A stretch of 64,000 bases of DNA from Oculina patagonica (taxonomy: Eukaryota). The translations under genes and the position numbers were made by a program. Positions 7,704 through 28,688 of the stretch are shown here, piece after piece (within the stretch, counting starts at the first letter, position 1; every line of letters begins with the position of its first letter). The notes beneath the pieces were generated by a model. That model searched no databases, was not told the DNA's origin, and saw only the letters and a list, made by a program, of their open reading frames with translations. The DNA is taken from positions 620,001 through 684,000 of the forward strand of contig NC_135765.1 in the NCBI RefSeq assembly GCF_052425735.1. Reading direction: 5' to 3'.

Positions 7704-8293
7704 TATTTGATTGATTCAATATTTACACAAGACTATTTTAGTATAACATCTTTGACGAATGAAGTATGAACGGATTATATTTTTTATCACGAACTGCAGG
7801 TAAATGAGTGTAAATTTAAGACGTATTTACAACTACTTTTGACATTGCAAACAACAGCTGGGATCATTTCTTTAGGTGACGTCATTTTGTTGGTTTTCCG
7901 GCCTTGGCTAATCAAAAAGGCAAGTTATTTATAATAAAGCAGTTCATCAGTTAAAGTGCCAATAAAGTGCTTAGTTTATTATCGTGCGACAGGGATTAAT
8001 CAGACTGCGAGAAGTTATCTTTTCTTTACTAGGTAGGCGATCATCAACCAAAGGAAATCGCGCCGACACTAAAAAAGATTTTCATGTCTCGATATAATGT
8101 CATGTTATCTAGCCCCAAGCCCCTTGCAATTGGGCTCGGCCGAGAGCGAGCTGTTCCCTTACCAACGTTCCTAAGGAATACCGGGGGGGAATACCGCAGG
8201 TGTTCCGTGGGCTTGGTCAGATAACCCCGCAGATATGCATAAGTACTACTGATACTACTCAACGTGCGAGTTACGAAGTATGTAAGTAGCTAT

Positions 8294-8769: not shown

Positions 8770-11700
8770 TTAGGTCAAACCCGCGGAAACTGGAGTCAGT
8801 TCCTTGGTTTTCACTCCTACTGTTCCTAGTCCGATGTCCAATACTCCCATCTCGATATCAACATTGTTACCTGAAAAATAAAGATGACAACTTTATTATT
8901 TCCCATGTAGATGTACTGTAGTAGCGAATGGTTATTTAACATCAGCCTCTAGGTCATATTCAGTTTTATTATAAAAGAACGCCGCCAATTTTAAATACAT
9001 TTTGCAGTGTTCATTATAAAAGCGATCTGATGATAAAAATCTTGACTGTTAATTGTAAGGTAAGAGCCACAGATAAACGAGTTCAATCTGGCTTAGACGA
9101 AGAAAATGTGGCTACGCAATGACTTCGGCCATCTTCTTCTCCACAAAAGCCGAGTGCCTTGTGCCTTGAATACTAGTAAGGTTCTAGTAACTGACAGTCA
9201 ATTATTTATACGGGAAATTCTGGATCTAAGAACATAGGAGATTTGTGTGGTATACATCGAGCCGGATGACAGCAAAAGCAGTAAAATATATCGGAGATAA
9301 ACAAGATAACTGTACAAACCAGCTGTTTTTTCCATGTGTCTGACTCTTGCGCTAATATTCCACAGGGTTCCTATCGTCATGAGAATGATTGTGAGACAAC
9401 CACAGGCCAGCAGAATGTAATCCATAAATGTCAGATGCGTCTCTGATGAAGCCGGCTTTATACGCTGGCGTTGCTTTCCACGACTGTATTGTTTAAAGCA
9501 GCTTACCTAAAAATTGAGAAAAAGCCTTCAATTATTTTTGATAATTTGTATCCAGTGCTGGTGACGCAGAAAAAGTGCTCAATGACGGTGCAGTTTTAAA
9601 ATACTTGTTCATTGTAACCAGTTGTTCGGGGTTCGCGGTCCGTGTTTGCATAGCACAATGAATCATGACATCAACGAGTGTTTTTTGAGAGTTTAAATTT
9701 GTGAGGACCAACTGAAACAAAGACAGGCAAATACCTAACAACTAACGATTTTTTATGGGCACTGCTGGTGCTTATCTCACTTTCAGAAGTATTGCTACTC
9801 CCCCTAGTTGAGGTGCTTGTCCACCCCAAGTTAGCTCTCAACCTTTAGTCAGATTGCAGATAACCATTTTTACTCACGGGTAGGGAGAAACAAAAGAGAA
9901 CAACACAGTGGGATTATGACCCCGGCCAGATTTGGAGCTCGAGTCCAGGCCGGCCTCTCGATCCAGCGCTGACCATGAGGCCACCGCGCGTCCGCCCCTC
10001 GCACAGAGGCTTTGTTTTGTTTTGTTGTTTGTTTGTTTGTTTTTTATTTGTTTTTATGGGAAAATGCGTGCGTGTGAACTGTATGCACAGTAAAGCTGAA
10101 AAACAAACTGCCGAGTTTTTGAACGATAACAAATTATTTAAGTTACTTGTTTTACTTGTGACCTTCCAAGCCTTAGACTTCGATACTGGGGGGAAGCATT
10201 GGGTGGCGATCCAATTATAGTCTGATCCAGTAAGATAAGTACACTATTAGAGTATGACATTGTAAGTCTAACTGATGAAAATGACAAATGTTTTCATAGT
10301 AGTGTAGTAGGCACCGGTTACCCCTGTTTTTTGGGCAGGAATCTCATTAGTGTGGGCAGAAATACATTAACGTGAATGACGTCATAGACTCATGAATAAA
10401 ATGCGTTGGATTTAATTAACCTGTGGGTGTTCTATTTTTATCCTGGTTGGTATAACCAGACTACCGCCACCACCACCACCACCGCCACCACAATTCTATT
10501 GTTTAACTCAATCACCAACACCACCGGTGGTGAAGTTAAACAATAGATTGTGGTGGCGGTGGTGGAGTTAAACAATAGAGTTGTGGCGGCGGTGGCGGAG
10601 TTAAACAATAGAATTGTGGTGGTGGTGGAGTTAAACAATAGAATTGTGGTGGTGGTGGTGGTGGTGGTGGAGTTAAACAATAGAATTGTGGCGGTGGTGG
10701 AGTTAAACAATAGAATTGTGGTGGTGGTGGAGTTAAACAATAGAATTGTGGCGGCGGTGGTGGAGTTAAACAATAGAATTGTGGCGGCAGTGGTGGAGTT
10801 AAACAATAGAATTGTGGCGGCGGTGGTGGTGGCGGTAGTCGGGTTACACCAACCAGGATAAAAATAGAACACCCAGAGGTTAATTAAATCCAACGCATTT
10901 TATTCATGGGACTATGACGTTATTCACGTTAATTTATTCCTGCCCATACTAATGAGATTCCTACCCAAAAAGAGCGGCTTATTCTGTGCCTACTATACTG
11001 CTTTTCTTACATCCGGCATGTCCGTTTCATTGATATCTTCTAATCCATCGTCTTCTACTCCCGATTTCAATCCATCGTCTGCCATTCCTGATGTCAATCC
11101 ATCGTCTGTCATTCCCGATCCCGAATACCAGTTCATTTCCCATTTCAACTGTATTTTCTGCCTCCAATATTCCATACAATAGGTAAAGTTTTCATCTGTT
11201 TTGCTCCTGTTAGTCAACTGAATTCCGACTCCGATGCTAGGTGACGAGGAGTATTCTTCAAGAACGTCGACAATCATGAAATCGAAGTGGCTCTTAGCCT
11301 TGCAGTCAAACAGCCATATTTTGTCCAGGGTCCCATTCTGCAGGCCGTCAAGGAGTTCATGTTCTGTAGAATACGCTGCAAACAACAAATGACCAGGAGC
11401 CCATTACCTGGAGTGACTAACAATACAATACAATACAATACAATGTTTAATGTGGTCATTACACTTAGCTATGGTTTCGATGCGTCCCGCAGATATGGTT
11501 AGCAAAATCTGCGGGAACGCACCAGCTAGTTTACAGGTAAGCCACAATGAAAATAAAACAAAAATAAAATAAAGTGAATAAAATTCTTCAAAGCTTTAAA
11601 GCTTTAAATATGTGCGACGCATTTCCTGATTAAAAATTTCTAGCTTAAAAATTAGTTAAAAAAAAAAGAGTGAGCTAAAAGTTATAAAATATATACAATT

Positions 11701-14700
11701 ATTTAATTAAAAATTAAAAATGACGACTAATACCTACAGCATTTAACGCCTTTCTAAAGGTTTTATAGCATATTGAAGTTCTGGCAGTGTCTGAGAGGCT
11801 ATTCCATAATTTGGGGGCGAAATATCGCCAAGATTTGAGTCCGTGCTTGGTAGTTTGCACTTTAGGTAGATTGAGAATATTTTGTCCTCTTAAGTTGTAG
11901 GAAGAGTTTCTAGGTTGTATCAGCTCACGCAAGCAGAGAGGGCTAGGACCGTTTATTGTTTTGAAAATCGAGCTAGCAATTTTGTATACTCGTTGTTCGG
12001 CCAAGGTTGGCAGGCCAAGGGCTTGTAGAAGGTCCCTGTAAGGGGTGTTCTTGTCCTTGAAAACAAAGCGAATGGCCCTTTCGTTAACCTTCTCTAGCTT
12101 TGTTGCAGAGGTTTTGCTGCAGAAGTGCCATGTCTCTGCGCAGTAATTAAAATGCGGAGCAATAAAAGACGTATTCGTATCACAGTGTTTATACTTTTAT
12201 TCTACATGTTGCAGCAGGGCCGTAACCAGACCTTTGCAATAGACGAGGCAAGATCTTGCTAGGGGGTTCTGGGGGCATGCCCTCCAGAAAATTTTGAAAT
12301 CTAGAAGCTCTGAAACTCTTTCAGAGACATTTTTCATGAGGTATTTCTTGAGCAAAATCAATCTTGTTCAACTGGGGATTATCCCCCCCCCCCCCCCAAA
12401 AAAAATGTTTTTAATTTTGGGTAAAAATCTAGACGAGGCAAGTGCCTCGTCTTGCCTCTTGCTAGTTACAGCCCTGTGCAGGTCTATTTTTGGATTGGCA
12501 CTTCCCGTACTGATTCGGAAAAACTGTGCGATTGAAATTGAGGAATACGGGAATTGGAAAAGGGCCTGAATAAGGGTGTCTCATGGGATAACACCTTGAC
12601 ACCAACATCCTTAGTTATTTTTCATTCCGTGTATCATATATGTAGTACATGCTGCAGGTCCATTTTAGATTGGACACATGCGGACCGGAGAACAAAATTT
12701 TTCGGGAGAATGGGAGCCTAAAAAAACCTAGTCTGTGAAAATGCCTTGACTTTGACGTAGTATATGGGAGATGCTCGCTTCGGTTAATGAAAGGCTAACA
12801 AAGGCTACAAAAATTAGGCTACAGGGGAAGGGGGAAACAGGACACCGTTTAAAAACAAGAAGATACCTTTGACTGATTCGGCTCCATAACAGTATCTCAT
12901 AAAGAAATTTCTGCTTCCCAAAGGAACACCAATCTGCAACAAATTCATGGTACATAAATAAAGTGACAAATACCCTGTATAGCTTTGTAACATTTTTTAG
13001 TACAGCACAAGAGAAGTTGTAACGAGTGACTGAAAAATATTAGGCTTCGTCAACATTCGAACCCATGATCTTCAATTAATTGATTAGAACATTGTCAAAA
13101 TAGTTTTTTGTCTGTCGAAAATTTTCATTATCTGTTAATTAATTTTTTTAATGAATACTTTTTTATCTTTCAACTGGTTAAGCGCTCCTGAAATTAATTT
13201 GGATGACCAGAATGTTGTTGTCCGAAGGTCGTACGAGTATTTCCGAACATTTCCGAAGATTACCGCAGATTGCAGAGGAAGATCTGAAGATGTTTCGACT
13301 TAATATCGATAAACTTTGGCTCATTGAGCATTGAAACATGGCAAACGCTGCGAGCTGATTGGTCAAAAATGATATCACACACGTGTGGATATCATTTGTA
13401 TCCACACATGTGTGATACCATTTTTTATCAATTTGCTACCACTCGCTATACCACTGCAATTTATATAGTAATGCTCAATGTGTACCACGTGATATAAACA
13501 TTAATACATCACGAAAACATGCCATACCTTGCTTCCAAATATTTCATTCAAAGGGCTCAGTCCATCGGCCGTGATGGAAGAGGAGATCTGGGCCGTAAAG
13601 GTTGACATCAACAACATTCCAATGATCATCCACAGTGACGCGTACGCTCGCCCCAGGAACGATTTCGGTGTCTTGTCACCATAGCTACAAAAACCAGTTA
13701 AACAAATATGCAAATTTTAAAGCGGAAAATGTAGAAATTGGAGCATCTTCAAACAATTCAACAAGTCAGACAACTCTAATTATAATATACGTGAGTAAGT
13801 TTGCCAGCTGAAGCCATTTCGACAACAAAATGCAAATAATGAAAAAACGTTTAGCGTTGCCGTAAACACTTTTCGTCAGTCGAATAATGTTCTTGTCTTA
13901 GACGAGAAAGAAAAATTCTTGGGTACTCAGAAGGAAAAATACTACTTCCGCAAGGAAGATAAAACACCCTGCTTGATTATTAAAACCACCTATTCAATTT
14001 TTTTCCTTTTGACAGATGCAATAAAAAGTCTAACTAATATACGTCACACGACGTCACACTTACCCTACTGTTGTCATGGTAACGATTGCCCACCACAAAC
14101 CTTCTCGTATGCCACTCCAAAATGAGTTTGGAAAGTGCCCAGAGTTTGCTTTGTGATCCTGTTTAAAAACGCGTACAGACAGACTATTTAGCATTCAAGG
14201 ACGAAAAAGACACTTTACGGTCAATAACATAACGATTAGCCCGCGAGAGCATCCGGATTTTTCGGCTCTTGTTTAAGTGTCACTGAAGTGTGTTGTTTTC
14301 AGAGGCAGGTGGCGATGAAAATAGTCTCAAGTATAAGAGTATGACATTAAAATAAAACTTTTCACCTATTAGGTTTTTAGTATTTATTTAAAACTTTTTT
14401 TGTCTAAAAACTTAGAGTTTCCGTGTAGTTTTGTAGTTTTCACTGGCTAACCTTCATCTGTTTTTGTTTTTCTTTTTTTTTACATGAATTGCGAATGCAC
14501 CCCTACAATGGCTTACGATCGCGAGCAGTTCTATATTTTCACTAGCTACAATGGCGGTTCGTTCTACGTCCTGTTGTCTTAACTGTTCACTGGGTCAGAA
14601 AACAGTCATAAAAGACTTAATAAATTTGTCAACTGTGAAACATATGGTCAATACGCCCCAAGAACATAACGGATATTTACTCATCGATCACGTATTTTCT

Positions 14701-15555
14701 TTGTTTTTATATTCAACCCAAGGAAGTCCATGTAGTCATTTCTTTTCTCGTATAAGCACCTTTGTTTTTCCCATTGCATATTGCTACCTGTATTTTATTC
14801 ATGCTTATATGTTACAAAAACTAGGCAATAATTCTTTGTGTTGCATTGCAAGCCGCACACAAAACTTCCCGGTGTTGTTTCAACAGCACACCTTGAAGTA
14901 AACATGGCTCGTGACGCTTTCGTTGCAGCAAGCGCGCGTTGCACGAAGTGGAAACGAGTTCTACTTTTCGCAACGATCACGGTAACGCTGCAACAAAAAT
15001 TTTACGCGTTGTTTAGGCCTGTTACACTAAGCCACGATTCCTGTAACTTTTTTTCGCAATTAACAAAGGCACAGCAAAATTGCGCGACAAGTTGCACGGA
15101 ACATTTCCAAGTAATCTTTACAATTTACTTACAAAAAACCAGATCAGAATTCCTGATAAGATCGCCGCCATTAGGCAAAGAACACACAATTGCCATATCT
15201 CCTCCAATGCGCGCATAATCTGCGCGGCAGTACCAGCAGATGCATCTTTCGCAGCTAAGACAGGCCTGTGTAGCATTTCCAATGTTATATTTGGCTTTCC
15301 AGAGATCAAGGGAAAAGTAATATCTACGACCGGACTCTTGCATCTTCTTGTCTCATTTGCCAAATGATAATTTTGAAGGCAATAGTTTGTAAAATTAACA
15401 ACGTCGCCTTCCAACTTCCTTAAACTAGGACTGTCGTTCGGGAAAAAATGAAAATTGAACGTATGATTCCAATCAAGCTTCACGCAATTTTCCAAAGGAC
15501 AAACGACATCGACGTTTAAAATTATAAAGAGGAATCGAAAAGCCTTGAACGGCAT
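8770..15555 (-). CDS. GluR0-like / iGluR-related ion channel with K+-type selectivity filter, copy A (7 coding exons)
   Basis: Phase-consistent GT-AG exons 15555-15133, 14158-14064, 13684-13528, 12933-12867, 11375-11011, 9506-9320 and 8870-8770 (TAA). The product has an N-terminal hydrophobic segment, a TM (WQLCVLCLMAAILSGILIWFF), a pore loop (GLWWAIVTMTTVGYGDKTP), a TM (AYASLWMIIGMLLMSTFTAQISSSIT), an S2-like region (IGVPLGS...YSTEHELLDGLQNGTLDKIWLFD) and a final TM (YILLACGCLTIILMTIGTLW). Confidence 0.82.
9760..10000 (-). mobile_element. Degenerate tRNA-derived SINE; paralogous copy at about 24520-24770
   Basis: Similar to the intact copy at 61515-61782 (tRNA-like head with A/B boxes and the ctactccccct...accatttttact core). 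Confidence 0.55.
10298..11002. mobile_element. Non-autonomous element with Polinton/Maverick-type termini and an internal minisatellite
   Basis: About 210-bp TIRs run from AGTAGTGTAGTAGGCAC to GTGCCTACTATACTGCT, with 6-bp flanks TTTCAT/TTTCTT. The empty site in copy B has a single TTTCTT (24902-24907). The core is about 10 units of GGAGTTAAACAATAGAATT(GTG/GCG)n. Confidence 0.75.
11420..12170 (-). mobile_element. LINE (CR1/L2 group) 3' fragment with (ATTGT)n tail, only in copy A
   Basis: The minus strand translates HFNYCAETWHFCS...KLEKVNERAIRFVF and YNLRGQNILNLPKVQTTKHGLKSWRYFAPKLWNSL. There is a CAATA repeat at 11421-11444, and the segment is absent from the copy B intron. Confidence 0.82.
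12215..12476. mobile_element. MITE with CAGGGCCGTAAC termini; second copy at 40079-40829
   Basis: TIRs cagggccgtaac / gttacagccctg, TGCAG on both flanks, and sequence near-identical to the copy in the SLC5 intron. Confidence 0.8.
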
Positions 15556-16099
15556 TTCTATGCCGCAATTTCCGTCTTCCTACAAGTATTGATAACTTTA
15601 AGGACCATTTACAGCCAACAATAATATCAGTATTAAATTTTAAGCCAATGTACGATAAAGCTGTTAATACTCTCGTCGCTTATTTAACACAACCAACAGA
15701 TGTTTTAGCGCCAAACAAGCTGCATGTAATTTTGTAGAATGGAGACAAAACGTCGATATGGGGTCCTCATGCTGACAGTTTGACACAGAAGGCTAGTGGT
15801 AGTTAATTAAATAGCAGTTTCTTAGAACTTTAAAATAAATAAAGAATTTTGTCACATGTCAATCATAAGAGTGCTTATGGTTATGTTTCTAGACGTTCCG
15901 GCCCACTATGGCATAAGTAAGATAACGGCGTTATGTTCGAGCTTATGATTGTCAGTGATCATTATGTCGCTTGTGGGAACTAGCCAATCACAACGAACAC
16001 AAGAGCTCGGAGCAAAAACATACCGCTGGCCAGTGCCAAGCGCGGGAAAACACGCCTGGGGGTAGTCTGAATTCCTTAGGCCACGAAGCAGGCCACTGT

Positions 16100-16453
16100 T
16101 TCACTTCACAGAGGCCTGTTGCATTATCATCTCTGGGATAAACATAATCACAGTGCGGAAATGGTAGATCAGAATCTATGAACTGTTTCCAGCATTTTTT
16201 TAAAATGAATTTTAGTATTTAATAAAGAAATTTAGTTTTTTATGAACTTAAGTATTTTATAAAGAAATTTAATTTTTTTATGAACTTTAGTATTTTATAA
16301 TGAATTTTAGTATTATAATGAATTTAGTATTTTATCATCCTATTGTAATTTTAAATATTTTATTTACTTCCTTTAATTAATATTGTTTTCGTTAATATAG
16401 ATATATTAGTTGTAAGAGCATTGAGATTTTTTAATATAATGCGCTAGAAATAA

Positions 16454-16506
<53 letters not shown>
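16100..16506 (+). repeat. Probable retroposon 3' end with AT-rich tandem repeats and a (TTA)n tail, at the edge of the duplicated block
   Basis: Short tandem units such as tttagtattttataa, then AATAAA followed by about 17 TTA units. Confidence 0.5.
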
Positions 16507-17994
16507 CACTATTTCTTGTTGATTGTATCGCAGGGTGATTTGCAGGGTATATATTTCACACTTGGCCGGTTTGGATAGCATGGTGTAAACTGTGTGTAGC
16601 AGATAAACTTTTCCATTTCCTTTGAACAGTTGCTGTTGATTTTTCCCTTTGAATAAAGTATCTTCTGCAGTTTGTAAACTTGGTGGAATTAACACGATAA
16701 GCATATAAAAAAATAGTTTGCATTTCGAAAAAAATGTTTGCAGAGGTGCATAAACAAAAAAAAAAAGTTTGCAGAGGAGAATTTGACATACCCCGCCCCT
16801 CCTTCAAGAAAATAATGGTCCATCCCTAATTCCCTGTTATACTTATTGTTTTGTATTTTACATTGTTAGAGAATGCTGAAGGCGGCTGTAGGACTTGCTT
16901 TGAGTTTCATATTTGTTATCAGGGTTTAGGGAAATTTACTATATATGGTATTCTTTTTTTCAGAACTTTTCAGTAAATATTATGTTAAAGGTTTTCATAA
17001 CATTGAGAAAATCCCTGAAAATTAAGTAATTATATGTCCACGGGCACCTGTTTTGTGACTTAGAACATTGTTTGTTTTATATTACCCCGTCCCCTAAAAT
17101 TTCAGTTTCAATTGAATAAATCCGGAATTGGAATGATTTATTTGTGTCAATAAACTCGAGAAGAAGAAAACAGAAATGTTTTGTGTTGATGTTAAAATTG
17201 TAACAAGATTCCTTTCAGACAAGTGAATATTTGAACAAACCGTCACTGATTTCTTTTGTGTGGTTCTACAAGGTTCAACAAATATACCAAGCACCGCCAA
17301 AACAAAAGTGAATGTTGTTTGAGCAGTGTCTGTGATTTGACAAAATGTCTTGATTGGTTTTACGAAAATTTACCCTGGAAAGGATGTAGGCACTCCTATT
17401 ACCGGAAACTTATACGATTTGCAATGCATTCTCGCTGTTAAATTGAATACACAATGAGAACGTGGACGAAATTATTTTTGAGTGAAAAAATAGAGGTTAA
17501 GCAAGAATCCCAGAGGAATCACCATGCGGAAACTACAGGATATGAAAACTTTACAAAAGGTAACTTTTTCTTTCTTTAGCTTAGGTTCCCTTTGAACGCC
17601 GCTTCTATGTACAAACCTTGTATACTTAAGTTTAAATTTGCCCAGAACGACGGCTGATTCCACGGCGTACTTGATTCGTGTTAAATTTCAGTTCGGCACA
17701 TTGGAATCTTCTCGTATAAACCAATCGCAGTTTTAACGTTTCACCGACAGCCCTCGTTGAATGAACAGTTGCGACTGTCGAACTAAATTATACGTTTTTC
17801 AGCGCATGAGTGGAGCGGCGTTTAAACCTGTCATCCTAATACTGATGCCTGTTTGAAGGTTGGAAAGTCACTCTTGCCAGACATTAGTGACCTTCACCAC
17901 ACTGAGTTAATTCGTCAATGCGAATCAAGTAATTAAGCAATAAACGGCACATTGATCCTAGATGGCAAGTAAAAAAAAGTGAAGTCTTGCGTTC

Positions 17995-18218
17995 GGGCCT
18001 TGTGGCCCCCCTGATCAGGCCGGAGCTTATCCATCGCGGTTTTCGTGGCGAGAAGCGACTAGGACCATTAATACTCCTCCCTGGATGGGATGCTAGTCCA
18101 TCGCAAGGTTACCCCCAGCATTAAATTCGCCAGTACCCATTTCTACACCTGGGTGGAGAGAAGCATTGTGGCCACCGCGCAATTCAGAGTCCAGCGCACT
18201 AACCATTAAGCCACCGCT
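17995..18218 (-). mobile_element. tRNA-derived SINE, internally deleted
   Basis: Shares ctggatgggatgctagtccatcgc...tacccattt.tacacctgggt.gagaga...gcactaaccatta with 61515-61782. Confidence 0.75.
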
Positions 18219-18421
18219 CATCCCATGGGGGGAGGGGAGGTGCTACATAGGATTGAAAGAAAGTTTTGGTAAGATTAAAATAGCGTTTACACGGTATTTC
18301 CTTCAGGTTAATTGACAATGCGAATAAAATTAGGGTACTCACGCATAACTCATATACTATTTGCGAGACATCGATAAACATCCAAACGTTGCTCGCCTTT
18401 CCGCATTTCCGGAACATGTAA

Positions 18422-19061
18422 AGCCCCGATCAAACGGTCATGATAGTTGATGATAGTTGATGAGAGTTCCAACTATCACGCGCGTTTGAACACGAACTAT
18501 CATGCACTATCATCAACTATCACCAACTATCATGCAGTTTGGACGTGTTCAAATTCGACATGATAGTTGATGATAGTTTTTACCGTTTGATCGCGGGGAT
18601 GATAGTGCATGATAGTTTATCGGTCAGTGGTTCAGTCAAAGACGGGCTCAATCCAAGATTCATGGCTGCCGCAAAGGAAATTCTATCGTTCGGTGAAGAA
18701 GATAACCGAAATTTAGATTAATATTTGGACTATAGTGAAGCTGAAAGCGAGCAAGTGAGTGGGAAGAAGAAGAGTAAAAACAACGTCGAGAAAGCACTGA
18801 AAATATCACTGCCAGAAGCAAGAGATAATGTGAAAGTATCGAAAACAAGGAAAAAACATGAAAACATTTTGCACCGAGTGATAGTGGAGTTGAGAACCGG
18901 AAAAGCAAAAAATTAAATGCGCGAGCACATTTCGTGATTTCGACAAACTATCGTCAACTATCATGGAGCGTTTGATCGCAAACGTGATAGTCAATATGAT
19001 AGTGAATGATAGTTGGAAGCAGCGAACTATCATCAACTATCATGACCGTTTGATCGAGGCT
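18422..19061. mobile_element. PIF/Harbinger-like MITE
   Basis: TIRs agccccgatcaaacggtcatgatagttgatgatagtt / aactatcatcaactatcatgaccgtttgatcgaggct, TAA on both flanks, and internal tgatagt repeats. Confidence 0.8.
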
Positions 19062-19178
19062 TAAGGTATGATTTAAATGTTGTAAATTCTGGTTAACTTT
19101 GATAGTTTCCAGTGGCTAGTATATTGTGTGCACTGCAGGTCATGTGGTCATTCCTATTGCTTGAATGAGACACCGGAG

Positions 19179-21914
19179 ATGTTATCGTATTTGGAATTCA
19201 TTTTACTCCAGTTTCTCAGCCTTTATGTTAAGAACTCCGCTGGCTATAGCGACTGCCGCACCAGTGTAAGATTTACAGATCATGTCCTCACTGGTCACGT
19301 GATGCGGACTCTAAATCACAAGACTTTTGAGAGCTGCACATTTTCCTGTGAACTGGAGCCGCAATGCTTCAGTGTCAACTACATTTCGTTGCACAAAACG
19401 TGCCAACTGAACAATGCAACCAAGGAATACTTTCCTGGTGACTTGGTGCAACAGAAGGGAACATTTTACATGGGTATGGTGGTTCGCAGTTATAATCCCT
19501 GTGAGAGCATGCGCTGTGAAAACGGAGGCACGTGTGTCAGCAGTCCTAGCTTGACTGAGTGCAAATGTGTTGATGGATTCACTGGACTTCACTGTGAGAG
19601 TAAGGATATTTTTATCTTGTACTACCTTTTATAAACGTCGTATAAACAAAAGGTTGCAGCTACTTTGCCGAAAAATTCTTTAATAGTAATAATTTTGTTA
19701 AACGCATGCGTGTACGTTTATGTTGCTTACGACTTAGTTGCCCAGCTCCAGGTTCCCATATGGTGAGGGAACTTACCTGTTTTTTTAAATAATTTCATCA
19801 TTTTTGTGTGCCCTCAATTCCCTTGTTTTCTCCACAATTTGGAGCCTCCACAATTTGGAACCTGAAATCTGCTAATAGCTATAAAGAAATTGCGACAGTG
19901 TCCCCACGAATATATAACTCGAAGCAGCAAAAGTAATTCGTGAACTAGTGACAATGTTTTTCTTTCAGATCTTCAAGCCTTTGGTATGGAAAGTGGAGCG
20001 ATTCCTGATGGAAGCATTCAAGCTTCCTCGACAAAGCCTGGGTACGATGCATGGAAGGGTCGCCTGAATGGACAATCCTGTTGGATGCCTGCACAAAATG
20101 ACAATACCGAGTACATCAAGGTGACCTTTGTAACCAGGGTAACCATCGTTGCCATAGCTACGCAAGGCGCCCCAGTGGACGGCTGCTGGGTGAAGACTTA
20201 CAAAATTAAATATGGCCATGGAAATTTCATAGCAGATGTCGTCCAGGTAATTTTACATCAAACACTGAACTTTCTTAAATATTCTTGGACATTCCGGGAA
20301 CAAAATCCATCAATTTTCGAACAATTGTTGGAGGAAACTAACGATGAACTTACATCCCATCCAGGGCAAGTAGTAGGGTACTTGACAGGACGGACTATCC
20401 CCTATAAAAAAGACAGGGGTGCTCGCGTGAGACACCACTAAAAGGGCACCGGAATCTTATTTCATGGACGTTGACCAAATTCATTTTCACCCCTTTGATT
20501 GGAAATTTCATGACTGGATGACTGTTTTCAAATAAATAATTCAAAAATAAAAGTTATTTGCGTAACAAATACAGTTACCGTTCCGGTCCCGTCATTTTTC
20601 AGATTAATAACCTGTAAGACCCTAGGTACCATGAGAACTCTAGCGGTGGTTTTAGCACTAAGTGGTACCAGTCCACAAATTTTACCCCGTAAAAGATATG
20701 ACGAGCATCCCCGTCATTTTAGGGGAGCCAAATCATTTTTTTTGCGTCTTCNNNNNNNNNNNNNNNNNNNNNNNNNNNNNNNNNNNNNNNNNNNNNNNNN
20801 NNNNNNNNNNNNNNNNNNNNNNNNNNNNNNNNNNNNNNNNNNNNNNNNNNNNNNNNNNNNNNNNNNNNNNNNNNNNNNNNCTGTTTTAAAGCAAATACAT
20901 GCTTGAGGGGTCGTGTGTACGTGTGACTAACTACCTACCTAAGAAAAATTAATATTACATTGTAAAAAACTAAAATAAACGATATTATATTTTAATAAAA
21001 TTAATATTTAAAATTGAAAATCACACAAGTGTTTTGGAGTTGTCTGGATCGACAAACTGCCAAAGTTAAGTTTTTTAAATATGGGGTCCATTCTCGCTTT
21101 TTTTGCAAAACTGCTTGTGGTAGGTAGCGTTATTAAAGTAGCTTGACACAAAATTTCATAAGACTGCACCTCTGTGTTGGATTGAGTTCTTTAAAAAGGA
21201 CGTTGAAAATCGTGGGACAACCGCTTTTTTGTGTCCTCTTAGGTTGTAGGGTCCGTGTCTCCACGTTACTAAATCTGAAATCGTTTTAGGAATCTTTTCG
21301 ATTACAATATTGTAAAACAGCTTAATAAGACTAAGTTTGTATAAATAGAGTATTGAGTCCCACTTAGTGATTTCCATCAACGTATCCGATGGTGTGTCCC
21401 ATGACAAGTTGAAGATAATTCTCGCTGCCCTGCGATGCAATGTTTCAAGTGCTTGTATGTGGTCAGAGTTGTTACACCCCCCCCCCCGACAATGATGCCA
21501 TACGTAACAGACGGCAGCATGACTTTGAAATAAAGGTCGAGAAGAGCTCTTCTTTTCAGAAATGAACATTTTTTCAGCAGGTTTAACCTCTCCTGTAAGA
21601 CACCTTCATCATGTGTAATACAATGGCCTAGTGGAATGTTGTGAACAGTTCACCTGCTCCCAGAAAAAAACAACAAAATGCATCTAAACTATACCTCCAT
21701 GATACGGACACCTCCAATTTATAGACACTCAGTTCTGCCCCTTTGGTGTTTGACTGTACTTTAATTATTTGTGCAGGCGTACCAGGCGAACTCAGACAAG
21801 AATACAGTGGTGACAAACAAGTTCCCTTCTCCTCGTAATGCCGAATGGATCAGCATCTATCCAGAAAGTTGGGCTTCGTGTATTGCATTGAGACTTGAAG
21901 TGTACGGATACTAA
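19179..21914 (+). CDS. Secreted PAN/Apple - EGF - F5/8 type C (discoidin) protein, lactadherin/EDIL3-like
   Basis: Exon 19179-19599 encodes a signal peptide, PAN (CTFSCELEPQCFSVNY...TCQLN) and EGF (CENGGTC...CKCVDGFTGLHCE). Exon 19969-20246 encodes GMESGAIPDGSIQASS...GRLNG...AIATQG...WVKTYKIKY. Exon 21777-21914 encodes ANSDKNTVVTN...IYPESWASCIALRLEVYGY*. The second intron spans the N-gap. Confidence 0.85.
20752..20880. other. Assembly gap (N run)
   Basis: Run of N characters. Confidence 0.99.
20940..21620 (-). mobile_element. Decayed LINE (CR1/L2 group) RT C-terminal fragment
   Basis: ORF 21156-21569 contains LETLHRRAARIIFNL...YNLRG...VPRFSTSFLKNSIQHRGAVL*, followed by an AT-rich tail. Confidence 0.75.
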
Positions 21915-23541
21915 ATAGCTACAAACAGGCACTTGCTTATGGGACTCACTACCACATCCCTGTCGGCATGTGTGAGCATGTGCGTGTTCAACTTTACTAT
22001 CTTTCACAAACACTTCAAACCGACCGACAACCACTTTAATTTAGACCTGTGTAATCACAAAGATTTCTTACAAAACCCTGAAATGTCAGTCGTACAAGGA
22101 GATAATTGATATTTCAGACTATCCTTCCAACAGCACGAACTGATTACCTAAGCTGAAGTTTCTCTTTGAGTTTTTTGTTTACATTTGTTGAAAGCTGAAA
22201 CAATAACTATGATCCTCTTTTTACACGGATAAAGGGACGGCAGTTTAAAAACATATGTACTTTTCAAAATCAGCAGTGCCTAAAAAAAATTCTAATCTTT
22301 GGTAGTCATGAGTCGTATGTAACATTAAATAAAAACCTCAGTGACGTACTTTAGGAAGTTTGAGGATGTTTTGGCAAAAATTTAATGGCCGAATCACGAA
22401 AACCAAGGGTGTGTTCGTTTGACCCTATTTGGGAATAACAATATATCTCAAATTGTTTGAGAATAGACATTCCGTCTGTACTGTGCAATAAAACGATTAT
22501 TTCGTTTGTGGAATAATCCGTGGATTCTCGTGCGTTTAGCTATACTACCCTTCTCTTTATTTACATCGTTTGCATCCCCAGCAGTTCCAGGGCGCCGAAT
22601 GTTGAGTCACCACGGTCGTGGTGTACCTCCGCTTTTCTTTTACATCCCAACAGCAATGGTTTCTCGCGCGCCGAAGGCGCACGCCATACCTAAGAAAATT
22701 TGATGAACCCATCGAGCTGAAGATTGTCACGTAATGCTCAATAAACTTCTGTGAGACGCGCCTGCAGGGAATCATGGTAGTTGTATTCAACAAAACATGT
22801 CATTGACTTGGCAACGCTGAATACAACAACCATGATTCCCGGATTCCGAAGTCTCCGAACGTAACTACGTACGCGTGTACGTCCCTATGCCACCCTCATG
22901 CACGAGCTGACCTTAACTTCGTACCTTAAAAAAAACAATAACAAATAGGGTAGAATTGAGTAAGGAAATATACAAGTGAAATATACGTTTATACGTTTTT
23001 TTGTCACTATTAGGCTTATTAGGTTTAAGATTTTTAAAGATTTTTTTTTCTCATTTCTATTTTGTAAATTTTAATTAACCGCAGGTCCACATTCTTTAGG
23101 TGACGTCATTTTGTTGGTTTTCCATCTCTTGGCTAATCAAAAAGGCAAGTTATTTATAAAGCAATTCATCAGTTAAAGTGCCGATAAAGTGCTTAGTTTA
23201 TTATCGTGCGCACAAGGATTAATCAGACTGCGAGAAGTTATCTTTTCTTTACTAGGTAAGCGACATCGACCAAAGGAAATCGCGCCGGCACTGAAAAAAG
23301 ATTTTCATGTCTCGATATAATGTCATGTTATTTAGCCCCAAGCCCCTTGCAATTGGGCTCGGCCGAGAGCGAGCTGTTCCCTTTACCAACGTTCCTAAGG
23401 AATACTGCGGGCGTACCGTGGGCTTGGTCAGATAACCTCGCAGAGATGTATGTGTACTACTGATATACTCAACGAGTAACATGCAAGTTACAAAGTATGT
23501 AAGTGGCTAGCGCATCTACTTTTACATGCATATGTTCTGTG

Positions 23542-26500
23542 TTAGGTCAAACCCGCGGAAACTGGAGTCAGTTCCTTGGTTTTCACTCCTATTGCTCCAA
23601 GTCCGATGTCCAATACTCCCATCTCGATATCAACATTGTTACCTGAAAAATAAAGATAACAACTTTATGATTTTCCATGTAGATGTACTGTAGTAGCGAA
23701 TGGTTGTATAATATCAGCCTCTAGGCCATATTCAGTTTTTTTTTTATAAAAGAACGCCGCCAATTTTAAATATATTTTGCAGTGTTCATCAGCGATCTGA
23801 TGACAAAAATCTTAACTGTTAATTGTAAGAGAAGCCTACAGATAAACGAGTTCAATCTGGCTACAAAATGGCTTCAAAATTTGGCTACAAAATGGCTTCG
23901 GTCATTTTCTTGTCCACGAAAGTGCCTTGTGCCTTGTTTACAAGTAATGACAGTCAATTATTTATACGGGAAATGTCTTGATCTAGGAACATAGGAGGAG
24001 ATTTGTGTGGCATCGAGCCGTGCAGGATGACAGCAAAAGCAGTTAAATATATCGGAGATTATCAAGATAACTGTACGAACCAGCTCTTTTTTCCATGTGT
24101 CTGACTCTTGCGCTAATATTCCACAGGGTTCCTATCGTCAAGAGAATGATAATGAGACAACCACAGGCCAGCAGAATGTAATCCATAAATGTCAGATGTG
24201 TCTCTGATGAAGCCGGCTTTATATACTGGCGGTTCTTCCCACGACTGTATTTTTTAAAACAGTTTTCCTGAAATTAAGAAAAAGAAAAACAAGAAATTTA
24301 AAATATTTTTAATAGTTCTATCCAGTACAGGCTAACCAAGCAGAAAAGTGCTTACGGTGCAGTTCAAAAATTCTTTTTTATTGTTACCAGTTGTTCGGAG
24401 TTCGTGGTCCTTTTTCACATATCACAATGGACCCATGACAAGTAGCGTGTGTGTTTTGGGAGTGGAAATTTGTGTGGAACAAAGACAGGTAAACAGCTAA
24501 CAACTAACGAATTTCAATGGACACTGCTGGAGCCTATCCCAGTTGCCGTTCCGTGAAGCGACTTGGGGTATTTCTACTCCCCCTGAATGGGTTGCTTGTT
24601 CATCACAAGTTAATCAGCATTTTGTAAGATCGCAGATACCCATTTTTACTGCCGGGTAGGGAGAGCCACAATATAAGAGAGCAACACAATCACGTGCGTG
24701 ATTTTGAGCTCGAATCCAGGCCACAAGATCCGGCGTCCAGCACGCAAACCATTAGGCCACCGAGTTTCCCACAAAAGCCTTTTTTATTTGTTTGTCTGTT
24801 TATCTGTTTGTTTTTCCTTGTTTCTATGTGTAAATGCGTGCGTGTGAATTGTAAAGTTAGAAAACAAACTGCAGAGTGCTATGGATGAAAATGACAAATG
24901 GTTTCTTACATCCGGTTCATCCATTCCCAATCCCGAATCCCTGTTCAACCATTCCGATTCCATTTCATCCATCCAATCTTCCATACACTTTGTAAAGTTG
25001 TCATACGTGCTGCTCTTGTTAGTCAACTGAATTCCGACTCCGATGTTGGGTAGCCAGGAGTATTCTTCAAGAACGTCGACAATCATGAAATCAAAGTGTG
25101 CCTTGGCCTTGCAGTCAAACAGCCATATTTTGTTCACAGTCCCCTTCTGCAGGCTGTCAAGCAGTTCATGCTCTGTAGAATTTTCTGCAAACAACAAATT
25201 TAGGAGCCTATAACGTCTATTATCTGAAGCGACTGGCGTATCGTATTCGTATCACGGGGTCTCAACAGGCTGGTCTATTTTTTCAAATGATACGTGTTAC
25301 ATGTTACGTCATAAAATTCTGAAATCAAAATTCACTAGCTATAGGCCTGCTAAATTTTCGTTGTCATTAGGCATAAGATAAACTAAAAATATATCTTTTT
25401 GCAAATTTCCAGATCGAAAGTGTTTTTCGCTTTTAAAACAGAGCATTTGAAATATTTGAGTTTTCCGTCGTATGTGACATCAAGCTAAGTGCCGTGACAA
25501 AGCTGTTTTGTTTGAAAAAAGGCCTTTCCTTTCCATTTTCAGAAGATTGAACATGTGATACACCTCCTACCTTATCATAATGTCGTGCTGTTAATGATTC
25601 AAATTTATCCTCATTTTTGTTTGCTTTTTATGAATTAAGTGAAGAACATTACCGTCATTCATCTAAACAAAACACCGTTTATAAGCAAAAATATACCTGT
25701 GACTGATTCGGCTCCATAACAGTATTTCATAAAGTAATTTCTGCTTCCCAAAGGAACACCAATCTGCAATAAATTCACGGAACATCTATGAGTTGACAAA
25801 TATTGTGTATAACTTTGTAAGATTTTTTTCTACAGCACGAGAGCAGTTGCGACAAGCGCCTGAAAATTTTTGGCTTTACTTCATCGAGATTCGAACCCAT
25901 GGTCGCCAGTGAACTTATTAGGAAGGACATTGTCATTCAAAATAGTTTACTTTGTATGTCGAAAATTTCTCATTATCTGTTAATTAATTTTTCAAATGAA
26001 TACTTTTTTGGTTTTTTATTTAGTTCAGAACACCTAAAAGTATTTTCGATCACCAGTTAGCAGTTTTGATAATTTTGCATTTTTTAGTTCTGAATATTGT
26101 AAATAAATATAGAAATTCACAGTAAAAAGAAACCGTTGTTGTTGTTGTCGTGCTAGTTCTTCGGGAAAACGGCGTTCATAAGCCTCTATGCTGAAGCTGT
26201 TATTGCTCAATGTGTACCATGTGATAATAGTACTTTGCTAATCACCTGCGAGTTAACCAATCAGCGCGCGCGTAAAGCACTATTCTCTTGTGTGGTATAT
26301 ACTAAATCAAGATAACATCTCATACCCTGCTTCCAAATATTTCATTCAACGGGCTCAGTCCATCGGCCGTAATGGAAGAGGAGATCTGGGCCGTGAATGT
26401 TGACATTAACAACATTCCGATGATCATCCACAGTGACGCGTACGCTCGCCCCAGGAATGATCTTGGCGTCTTGTCGCCATAGCTACAAAACCAGTTAAAC

Positions 26501-28332
26501 AAATATGCAAATTTTAAAGCGGAAAATGTAGAAATTGGAGCATCTTCAAACAAATCAACAAGTCGGACAAATCTAATTACAATATTCGTGGGTAAGTTTG
26601 CCAGCTGTAGCCATTTCGACAGCAAAATGCAAAATAGTGAAAAACCTTTTGTGGTAAAACACTTTTCGCCAGTGAAATAATGTTCTTGTCGGTTTCATAG
26701 ACAAGAAAATAAATTCTGGGATACACAAGGAAAAATACTACTGCCAAAAGGAGAATAAAACGCTCTACTTGACTATTCTTGCTATAATTAAAACTACCTT
26801 TTCAATTTTTTGACAGATGCAATAAATTTCTAACTAATATACGTCACGTGACGTCACGCTTACCCTACAGTTGTCATGGTAACGATGGCCCACCACAAAC
26901 CTTCACGTATGCCACTCCAAAATGAGTTTGGAAAATGTCCGGAGTTTGCTTTGTGATCCTGTTGAAAAACGCGTACAGCCAGACTATTAAGCTTTCTTAT
27001 TATTCAGCTTATTGGCCCACGAGAGCATCCGGTTTTTTTGGCTCTTGTTCAAGTGTCACTGAAGTGTGTTGTTTTTAGCGCCAGGTGGCGATGAAAATGG
27101 TCTTAAGTATAAGAGTATGAATTTAAAATAATTTTTCAGCTATAAGGTTTTTAGAATTTATTTAAAACTTTTTTTGTCAAAAAACTTAGAGTTTCCGTCT
27201 ATTTTTGTTTCTCTTTAAATGGAATTTCTTTTAATATTATACATAGCTTTCACTGACAAACCTTCATCTGTTTTTGTTTTCTTTTTTTTTTACATGAATT
27301 GCGAATGCACCTTTACAATGGCTTACGAGTAGTTCTATAGTTTCACTAGCTACAATGGCGATTTGTTCTACGTCCCGTTGTCTTACTCGTTCACTGGTTC
27401 GGAAAACAATTGAAAAGAGCTTTATAAATTTGAGATGTGTGAAACACATGGTCAATACGCTGCCAGAAACATAACGGATATTTACCCATCGAACGCGTAA
27501 TTTCTTTGTTTTCATATTCAACCCAAGGAAGTCCATTAAGTCACGTTTTTTCTATAAGCACCTTGTTTGCTACATGTATTTTATCTATGCTCATATGTTA
27601 AGTTAGGGCGCCGTTACACTAGCTTGGCAATTCTTTGTGTTGCATTGCAAACCGCACGAGAAACATTTTTATATTTCAACAGCACACCGTGAAGAAAACA
27701 TGCCTCGTGACGTTCTCGCTGCAGCAAGCGTGCGTTGCACGAAGTAGAAACGAGTTCTACACGGTAACGCTGCAACAAAAAATTTTACGCGTTGCCTAGG
27801 GCTGTTACACTAGCCACGATTCCTGCAACTTTTTTTCGCAACGGCACAACAACATTGTGAGACAAGTTGACGGAACATTTCCGAGTAATCTTTTCAATAA
27901 ACTACTTACAAAAAACCAGATCAGAATTCCTGATAAGATAGCCGCCATTAGGCAAAGAACAAACAGTTGCCATATCTCCTCCAATGCGCGCAAAATCTGC
28001 CCGGCAGTACCAGCAGATGCATCTTTCGCAGCTAAGACAGGCCTGTGTAGCATTTTCAATGTTATATTTGGCTCTCCAGAGATCAAGGGAAAAGTAACAT
28101 CTACGACCGGACTCTTGCATCTTCTTGTCCCATTTGCCAAATGATAATTTTGAAGGCAATAGTTTGTAAAATTAACAACTTCACCTTTCAACTTCCTGAA
28201 ATAAGGACTGTCGCTCGGGAAAAAACTAAAATTGAACTCGTGTTTCCAACTTAGCTTCACGCAATTTTCCAAAGGACAAACGACATCGACGTTTAAAATT
28301 ATAAAGAGAAGTCGAAAAGCCTGGAACGACAT
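23542..28332 (-). CDS. GluR0-like / iGluR-related ion channel with K+-type selectivity filter, copy B
   Basis: Same exon structure as copy A: 28332-27910, 26958-26864, 26482-26326, about 25763-25697, about 25184-24910, about 24267-24081 and about 23642-23542. The WWAIVTMTTVGYGDKTP pore and STFTAQISSSIT helix are identical to copy A. Confidence 0.82.
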
Positions 28333-28688
28333 TTCTATGTAAAAGTTTCCGTCTTCCTTCAAAAATTGATAACTTTTAGGATAATTTAACGCCAACAACA
28401 GTATCAGCATAAATTTTTATGCCATTGTACGATAAAGCTGTTAATACTCTCGTCGCTTATCTAACACAACCAACAGATGTTTTAGCACCAAACAAGCTGC
28501 ATGTTTTTTTGTAGAATAGAGACAAAACGTCGATATGGGGTCCTCAAGTTGACAGTATGACATGAAAGGTTAGTGGTACTGAGTAGCAGTTTTTGAATAA
28601 AGAGCGACATAATCATAGTCAGATGATTATGATCATGTGGATCATAAGAGTGCTTATGATTATATTTCTAGACGTCACGGCCCACTAT

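Follow-up and report, generated by a model that had tools for sequence, protein, structure and literature searches.

Here we report two paralogous channel genes, gene A and gene B, on the minus strand of a 64,000-nucleotide stretch of the genome of the coral Oculina patagonica (GCF_052425735.1, contig NC_135765.1, positions 620,001 to 684,000; hereafter the window, from whose first letter all positions below are counted). Both genes lie within 8770-28332, and each appears to encode a subunit of the ionotropic glutamate receptor (iGluR) superfamily in the layout of the bacterial receptor GluR0; to this architecture together with a working ectodomain we assign a probability of roughly 0.7. The pore is a true K+-channel pore, homologous to those of bacterial GluR0-like proteins and under strong purifying selection. 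Judged by its sequence it is likely to be selective for K+, and gating by a small extracellular ligand specifically is about an even proposition.

We propose that each gene would supply one subunit of a tetrameric channel, a minimal GluR0-like form of the superfamily, in which the segment before the first membrane helix M1 (S1) and that between M3 and M4 (S2) would form a bipartite extracellular clamshell of the binding-protein type. It would be mounted on a K+-channel pore that is inverted and keeps its TTVGYGD filter intact. As in iGluRs, a ligand closing the clamshell would pull M3 open through the M3-S2 linker, and since the open pore would be K+-selective, activation would hyperpolarise the cell.

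Gene structure and product of the two paralogs

Open-reading-frame lists, direct reading and tblastn of exon peptides gave seven exons for each gene. Gene A (8770-15555) runs from an ATG at 15555 to a TAA at 8770 and has a product of 464 aa, and gene B (23542-28332) runs from an ATG at 28332 to a TAA at 23542 and has a product of 434 aa. All 12 introns, six per gene, are bounded by GT-AG, and a single open frame passes through each gene. In both, exon 2 ends in ...ACA GTA GG and exon 3 starts with C TAT GGT GAC, the Gly codon of the TTVG/YGD filter being interrupted as GG/C by intron 2. An earlier sequence-only reading of this DNA had claimed intron-containing genes with a filter divided in just this manner; direct reading bore out the split in both copies, and the motifs it had quoted, WWAIVTMTTVGYGDKTP, STFTAQISSSIT, IGVPLGS and ELLDGLQNGTLDKIWLFD, are all present in the genes at the places it gave.

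Exon 1 of gene A (15133..15555) holds the start codon, a signal-like N-terminus, S1 with five N-glycosylation sequons and Cys24, Cys59 and Cys72, a pre-M1 helix and M1. Its frame is open from the ATG at 15555, the donor GT stands at 15132, and it shares 87% identity with exon 1 of gene B (27910..28332), where the start codon, signal-like N-terminus, S1 and M1 are likewise found. The M1-pore linker, the pore helix and the first half of the filter (...WWAIVTMTTVG, ending in GG/) are encoded by exon 2 (14064..14158 in gene A, with an AG acceptor and a GTAAGT donor), which is 100% identical at the amino acid level to the exon of gene B that carries the pore helix and TTVG up to the same GG/ (26864..26958). 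Exon 3 (13528..13684; gene B 26326..26482) supplies the C completing the Gly codon, then YGDKTP and M3, which in gene A reads STFTAQISSSIT and leads into the start of the M3-S2 linker.

S2 begins in exon 4 (12867..12933; gene B 25697..25763), whose first strand and helix in gene A (IGVPLGSRNFF...) match the Gly-Ser/Thr strand of bacterial S2. The remainder of S2 (ELLDGLQNGTLDKIWLFDC... in gene A) and an acidic linker lie in exon 5, the linker consisting of DDGL repeats in gene A (11011..11375) and being short in gene B (24910..25184). Exon 6 (9320..9506; gene B 24081..24267) carries the pre-M4 segment with its conserved Cys-x-K-x-YSRGK motif and M4 (hydropathy 2.2 in gene A), followed in gene A by the start of the tail, and is consistent with the NCBI models P0026 (the junction in gene A) and P0011 (gene B). 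The cytoplasmic tail and the TAA stop are in exon 7 (8770..8870; gene B 23542..23642).

The deposited NCBI models ACROYT_G026913 and ACROYT_G026915 correspond exactly to the C-terminal 371 and 341 residues of our gene A and gene B models. Both begin at an internal methionine, Met94, so that the signal peptide and the greater part of S1 are missing. The frame across the first 94 codons (15274-15555 and 28051-28332) is open to Met1 and 87% conserved between the copies, and the full N-terminus upstream of Met94 is also present in related corals, including transcript-like contigs. The deposited models are therefore probably truncated, short by 93 N-terminal residues.

The sequence-only reading had named failure of transcripts to join these exons as evidence that would count against it. 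Transcript-like contigs of related corals do join the same exons: protein P0027 (439 aa, 66% identical to gene B) is an unbroken frame on a 2,235-base contig of a JGI metatranscriptome, L001, and P0028 (492 aa) is an unbroken frame on a 1,828-base Logan contig, L002. Both contigs are intronless, and the blocks that align to the window end at the exon borders of the gene models, with L001 33-457, 457-561, 553-708, 707-770, 778-996, 1166-1263 and 1261-1326 corresponding to exons 1 to 7 of gene A.

The product is arranged as a signal-like N-terminus, S1, M1, K+ pore loop, M3, S2, acidic linker, M4 and tail, with three hydrophobic helices besides the pore loop. In gene A numbering, the hydrophobic signal-like N-terminus spans residues 1-21 and S1 approximately 22-105 (about 100 aa); the pre-M1 helix leads into M1, placed by hydropathy at 123-141, and the pore helix is followed by TTVGYGD, the filter starting at residue 168. 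M3 lies at 186-206, and S2 at approximately 213-330 (about 120 aa) with three sequons, a fourth in the linker, and Cys272 and Cys314. The acidic linker connects S2 to the pre-M4 segment, after which come M4, a hydrophobic segment at 400-418 (370-388 in gene B), and a cytoplasmic tail of 46 aa. In exon 5 of gene A, a 27-bp in-frame tandem repeat of 2.9 copies (11042-11119) gives rise to the DDGL-x-SG repeats of this linker, which is therefore 30 residues longer in gene A than in gene B, as is the whole product.

Cysteines 24, 59, 72, 272, 314 and 372 are invariant or nearly so across the coral subfamily and are confined to S1, S2 and the pre-M4 segment. Sequons and cysteines occur in both loops and nowhere in the M1-M3 core, and TFPLIS, GVPxGS and WLFxC are motifs that scarcely change from genus to genus. 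Since the start is signal-like and both loops carry sequons and cysteines, we infer that S1 and S2 are extracellular and that the pore loop enters from the cytoplasm, in the orientation of iGluRs and GluR0. Only about 100 residues precede M1, and no amino-terminal domain is present. The architecture claimed by the sequence-only reading, with S1, M1, pore, M3, S2, M4 and a short tail and without an amino-terminal domain, thus holds on the gene models.

The pore, the ectodomain and the predicted fold

A TTVGYGD potassium filter set in an iGluR-type frame had been claimed for this locus, and the pore of the spliced product passes the Pfam cut-offs for both Ion_trans_2 (E 1.1e-13; 51.3 bits against a cut-off of 22.5) and Lig_chan (1.1e-9; 38.7 bits against 30.8; profile positions 2-98 of 146), with Ion_trans at 2e-11. 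When single exons were submitted only exon 3 was matched (Ion_trans_2 6e-6, Lig_chan 1.6e-5). Comparison of the coral pore with the bacterial GluR0-like pore by hhalign gave an E of 1e-42. The 17-residue filter stretch WWAIVTMTTVGYGDKTP is letter-for-letter the same in the bacterial protein P0043, with the following 30 residues about 60% alike, an identity that may reflect either constraint or transfer between bacteria and cnidarians. M3 reads STFTAQISS and shares at most two or three positions with the SYTANLAAF motif of animal iGluRs.

Rigid-body comparison with VIA-align placed the pore closest to MloK1, SthK, Kv and KCNQ channels (Z 12-13.7, root-mean-square deviation (rmsd) 1.9-2.7 Å over approximately 100 residues), and the best 60 of 253 matches of the full-length profile among PDB sequences were all K+ channels. 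Between gene A and gene B the ratio of non-synonymous to synonymous rates (dN/dS) is 0.06 in the pore, where 17 synonymous differences stand against four non-synonymous ones, and 0.48 overall.

The second lobe of the putative clamshell is identifiable by profile comparison. Coral S2 aligned with bacterial S2 over 81 columns (hhalign E 6e-8, probability 95%) and with S2 of the wider cnidarian family at the same E of 6e-8; in the controls, reversed profiles gave E > 0.1 and 0/30 column shuffles reached the score. Searched against PDB sequences, a profile of coral S2 by itself matched only periplasmic amino-acid-binding proteins, aligned to their C-terminal half, with AncQR (4zv1; E 1.2e-3, residues 107-220 of 233) as the best match and a deoxyfructosyl-amino-acid binding protein and an arginine-binding protein among the others. 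These alignments identify S2 as a homologue of the second half of periplasmic amino-acid-binding proteins of type II, and it is sited as in GluR0 and iGluRs. The Gly-Ser of S2 is kept in 12-13/13 sequences of the coral subfamily.

Structure prediction tentatively extends this picture to S1. An AlphaFold2 model built on 149 rows of coral, wider cnidarian and bacterial sequences reached a mean confidence (pLDDT) of 78 and a predicted TM-score (pTM) of 0.65, with pLDDT of 76-89 in S1 (residues 30-100), 86-93 in S2 (220-270) and above 90 in the pore and M4. S1 is modelled with strand-helix-strand-strand elements, in which alignment bias is possible, and a few structural alignments begin at residues 28-29. 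The top 50 Foldseek matches in the PDB were exclusively chains of AMPA and NMDA receptors comprising the ligand-binding and transmembrane domains (E approximately 1e-7, 340-410 columns), and the top 30 among Swiss-Prot AlphaFold models were exclusively plant, NMDA and AMPA receptors. A model from a shallower alignment retrieved the same receptor families. The Foldseek alignments span 340-470 columns, and many of those to Swiss-Prot models reach M4 and the C-terminus (residues 430-439). TM-scores are low (about 0.3), rmsd is high and identity in the structural alignments is 10-17%; we attribute the low TM-scores and high rmsd to domains that are not fixed relative to one another in a model of a single subunit. 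VIA-align matched the ligand-binding and transmembrane domains of an AMPA receptor with Z 10.1 over model residues 28-326, its match lists being filled by the pore domain and holding little information on the ectodomain. The placement of S1 in an iGluR-like ligand-binding domain is a prediction from the AlphaFold models and their Foldseek matches only. The claim that iGluR-type ligand-binding halves flank the pore stands for S2, by its homology to binding proteins, and does not stand for S1 by sequence, that half being iGluR-like only in the models.

The preponderance of K+ channels among the best PDB sequence and rigid-body structure matches, together with the higher score of Ion_trans_2 than of Lig_chan, is what one would expect if these genes encoded an ordinary two-helix K+ channel in the usual orientation, whose two terminal domains lie in the cytoplasm and which carries an additional, unrelated helix, the likeness to iGluRs being superficial. 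We consider this very improbable. Such a channel would not account for a signal-like N-terminus, nine sequons and invariant cysteines in the two loops, or for binding-protein homology at exactly the place where GluR0 and iGluRs carry their S2; moreover, the nearest relatives outside Cnidaria are of the GluR0 type and not plain K+ channels, and the top Foldseek matches are all iGluRs.

Several results weigh against the proposed channel. Coral S1 did not align significantly with bacterial S1 (hhalign E 0.28; 26/60 shuffles as good) and only marginally with S1 of the wider cnidarian family (E 0.024; 2/60 shuffles as good), and its profile found nothing meaningful among PDB sequences. Neither SBP_bac_3 nor Lig_chan-Glu_bd was matched by proteins P0011, P0027 and P0040 in Pfam, in which bacterial P0043 matches SBP_bac_3 at 1.5e-26; of the domains that the sequence-only reading had proposed to search for, Ion_trans_2 and Lig_chan were therefore recovered and SBP_bac_3 was not. 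The coral subfamily has not conserved the classical ligand residues: the S1 Arg is present in 9/18 sequences and the S2 Asp in 5/10. With a cnidarian-only alignment of 30 rows AlphaFold2 gave a pLDDT of just 60, and the deep alignment behind the better model contains channels with genuine binding domains, whose fold may have been imposed on S1. From small counts, dN/dS is 1.3 in S1 (4 synonymous, 20 non-synonymous) and 0.68 in S2 and the rest, and such weak constraint is also what a decaying ectodomain would show. Finally, no Oculina patagonica RNA for the spliced genes was found, the runs aligned on 23500-28400 being DNA contigs.

Some of these observations could be read as a K+ channel with a vestigial ligand-binding domain, in which the S1 lobe has decayed in the coral subfamily and the protein acts as a leak channel or is regulated otherwise, by assembly, a partner protein, a glycan or a mechanical cue. 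In its favour, no half of a binding protein is detectably homologous to S1, members of the subfamily differ in the S1 Arg and in the S2 Asp, and dN/dS in S1 far exceeds that in the pore. A profile of exon 1 (S1 and M1) matched only 25 proteins when searched against 1.84 billion cluster representatives, and the N-terminal half is therefore lineage-restricted. We nevertheless regard a vestigial domain as unlikely, though it is the most serious of the alternatives. The six cysteines and the TFPLIS, GVPxGS and WLFxC motifs are near-invariant across genera, from which it follows that the ectodomain is still constrained; S2 retains a full binding-protein half; and raised dN/dS is equally consistent with diversification of specificity. 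Insect ionotropic receptors (IRs) have lost the classical residues and yet bind ligands, which also counts against vestigiality.

The weak alignment of coral S1 with that of the wider cnidarian family is collinear and brings the three cysteines into line, and S1 of that wider family does align with bacterial S1 (73 columns, the PPY strand among them; E 5e-6). The classical site comprises an S1 Arg that binds the alpha-carboxylate, an S2 Ser/Thr, and an S2 Asp/Glu for the alpha-amino group. In the deep alignment, the S1 column of which is uncertain, the Arg is found in 40/50 bacterial sequences and in 12/74 of the wider cnidarian family. The sequence-only reading had noted a short S1 with no obvious carboxylate-binding Arg, and the lack of significant S1 homology and of a conserved Arg agrees with it. 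Neither the S1 Arg nor the S2 Asp is constant in the coral subfamily, and the mode of ligand binding therefore probably differs from that of an alpha-amino acid in classical iGluRs. Small as the counts are, the pore is tightly held and the ectodomain is free or diversifying.

Duplication and the surrounding locus

Gene A and gene B share 70-100% identity per exon, and their introns 1, 2 and 6 are 87-89% alike, which indicates a young duplication. The genome holds five exon-1 copies of this subfamily, the two in the window and three more within 16 kb on another contig (C4 of G000, about 52,630,467-52,646,561). The latter are 47%, 47% and 32% identical, two of them standing head to head, and probably correspond to ACROYT_G016595 and G016596, which the database proteins place off the present contig.

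So similar a pair could in principle be recently duplicated, non-functional or mis-assembled copies, unexpressed leftovers rather than working genes, and the likeness of introns 1, 2 and 6, the assembly gap between the copies and the lack of the spliced form in any Oculina patagonica RNA run all suit that explanation. Runs containing 0.24-0.27 of the search words were considered as transcripts and rejected; their contigs are 95-99% alike, cover introns and contain no splice joints, as expected of DNA. The runs listed for exon 1, with 0.05-0.28 of the words in each, were RNA by guess only. Dead copies would not, however, be expected to keep complete frames and all 12 splice sites in both members of the pair, nor to differ in the pore by 17 synonymous and only 4 non-synonymous changes, and full-length orthologous transcripts exist in related corals alongside the three further paralogs on the other contig. 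We give this explanation scarcely any weight.

The sole run of Ns, at 20752-20880, lies 5.2 kb past the start codon of gene A and 2.7 kb past the stop of gene B and leaves the exons and introns of both untouched. What depends on this scaffold join is just how far apart the genes are and that they are neighbours. Between the channel genes, plus-strand exons at 19128-20441 encode PAN_1 (4.8e-7), EGF (5e-7) and F5/8 type C (8.5e-8) domains; the gap falls just downstream of the last of them and may cut that plus-strand gene.

Intron 5 measures 1,504 bases in gene A and 642 in gene B. Beginning 40 bases past the exon 5 donor, intron 5 of gene A contains a foldback insertion resembling a miniature inverted-repeat transposable element (10328-10971), with terminal inverted repeats of 156 nt (10328-10483 and 10816-10971) that are 92% complementary and enclose a 33-bp minisatellite of approximately nine copies (10525-10829). 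This insertion is absent from gene B and probably explains part of the difference in length.

A few hundred bases 3' of the stop of each channel gene, near-identical minus-strand frames of 72-76 aa are found (8044-8262 and 23252-23482); either the duplication took in sequence past the coding exons or both genes are followed by the same repeat. Two other minus-strand frames, one of 96 aa within intron 4 of gene A (11714-12004) and one of 137 aa between the channel genes (21156-21569), had no Pfam match. From their sequence we take them to resemble the tails of retrotransposon proteins.

Relatives of the family and its possible meaning

Searches with the spliced protein returned stony corals first (Stylophora, Pocillopora, Porites, Orbicella and Desmophyllum), then a jellyfish protein, and then about 100 bacterial proteins with the SBP_bac_3, Lig_chan and Ion_trans_2 domains of the GluR0 type (E 1e-21 to 1e-12). 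The jellyfish protein in turn retrieved a large cnidarian family from Scyphozoa, Hydrozoa and Anthozoa, among them Nematostella and Acropora, followed by bacterial GluR0-like proteins. This wider family includes members from Rhopilema, Clytia, Hydractinia, Nematostella, Acropora, Montipora, Porites, Pocillopora, Stylophora and Oculina, which the databases name ‘uncharacterized protein’ or ‘Potassium channel domain-containing protein’. Language-model features pointed to the same group: the three nearest ESM Atlas clusters (76, 85 and 154 members, together approximately 300) combine Ion_trans_2 with Lig_chan and are Cnidaria-only as far as their taxa are known, and the next clusters contain algal, plant, diatom, giant-virus, arthropod IR and bacterial Lig_chan/SBP_bac_3 proteins. 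On these searches, the family is restricted to cnidarians and its nearest non-cnidarian relatives are bacterial GluR0-type channels.

A quick maximum-likelihood tree of the pore plus S2 separated bacterial (SH-aLRT 99), wider cnidarian (94) and coral-subfamily (82) sequences; drawn without animal, plant or algal iGluRs, it cannot be rooted or decide between vertical descent and transfer from bacteria.

GluR0 of Synechocystis and its bacterial relatives are prokaryotic K+-selective glutamate receptors with two helices, according to PMC12332018 and PMC12226733, which cite Chen et al. 1999. The coral proteins are similar to GluR0 in having no amino-terminal domain and in the order of S1, M1, a TxVGYGD pore loop, M3 and S2, but differ in that their genes have introns and their products a signal peptide, a fourth membrane helix and a cytoplasmic tail. 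Also unlike in GluR0-type channels, S1 is unrecognisable by sequence, SBP_bac_3 is undetected by Pfam and the binding-site Arg is not conserved.

In PMC12332018 and PMC12226733, the rotifer receptor AvGluR1 (2011) is described as similar to bacterial iGluRs, with a K+ signature in the pore loop, an M4 and a preference for K+ over Na+, and PMC12332018 ascribes to it the full eukaryotic iGluR architecture. Compared by description only, AvGluR1 resembles the coral proteins as a eukaryotic iGluR-type subunit that keeps the K+-channel pore signature and has M4, and it is set apart by its amino-terminal domain, the coral proteins having only some 100 residues before M1.

Animal and plant iGluRs (AMPA, kainate, NMDA, delta, epsilon and GLR) share with the coral proteins the membrane topology, the order from S1 to M4 and the Lig_chan match, whereas in the coral proteins a K+ filter replaces the pore loop with its Q/R/N site and the amino-terminal domain is missing. 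The coral M3 sequence STFTAQISS also departs from the SYTANLAAF gate motif of animal iGluRs (AKDF, NMDA and epsilon). A survey of metazoan iGluRs dropped sequences with fewer than four of the nine SYTANLAAF residues, as stated in PMC6307864, and the coral M3 would therefore fail its four-of-nine rule. The family has probably been overlooked for this reason and because Pfam is blind to its binding domain. No description of it was found in the literature searched, a coverage from which subscription journals were mostly absent.

Members of the wider cnidarian Ion_trans_2 and Lig_chan family have the same architecture as the stony-coral proteins, with TVGYGD and M4, and fall in the same nearest ESM Atlas clusters, but their S1 still aligns with bacterial S1 and that of the stony-coral subfamily does not. 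The cnidarian family is set apart from GluR0 by introns, a signal peptide and M4, and from AvGluR1 and all animal iGluRs by the missing amino-terminal domain; the unrecognisable S1 distinguishes the subfamily in the window from every one of these.

Going further, we tentatively suggest, as a view that is plausible though not the favoured outcome, that cnidarians possess a large family of receptor-channels standing between bacterial GluR0 and animal iGluRs, in which an extracellular clamshell is joined to an inverted, K+-selective pore and an M4 without an amino-terminal domain, and in which extracellular ligands would open a K+ conductance. In the stony-coral subfamily S1 would have been remodelled for a ligand other than an amino acid. 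Such a family might be a surviving early branch of the iGluRs, or an old bacterial transfer that gained introns, a signal peptide and M4.

The origin of iGluRs from a binding protein and a K+ channel has so far been argued from GluR0 and AvGluR1 alone, and the cnidarian family offers a third, species-rich comparison point, in animals with nervous systems. We know of no ligand-gated K+ conductance that serves as a fast inhibitory mechanism in animals. If the proposal is correct, a K+ conductance opened by ligands would provide for fast inhibitory chemoreception or transmission, and the coral genes, if their products are ligand-gated and K+-selective, would be candidate chemoreceptors in reef corals.

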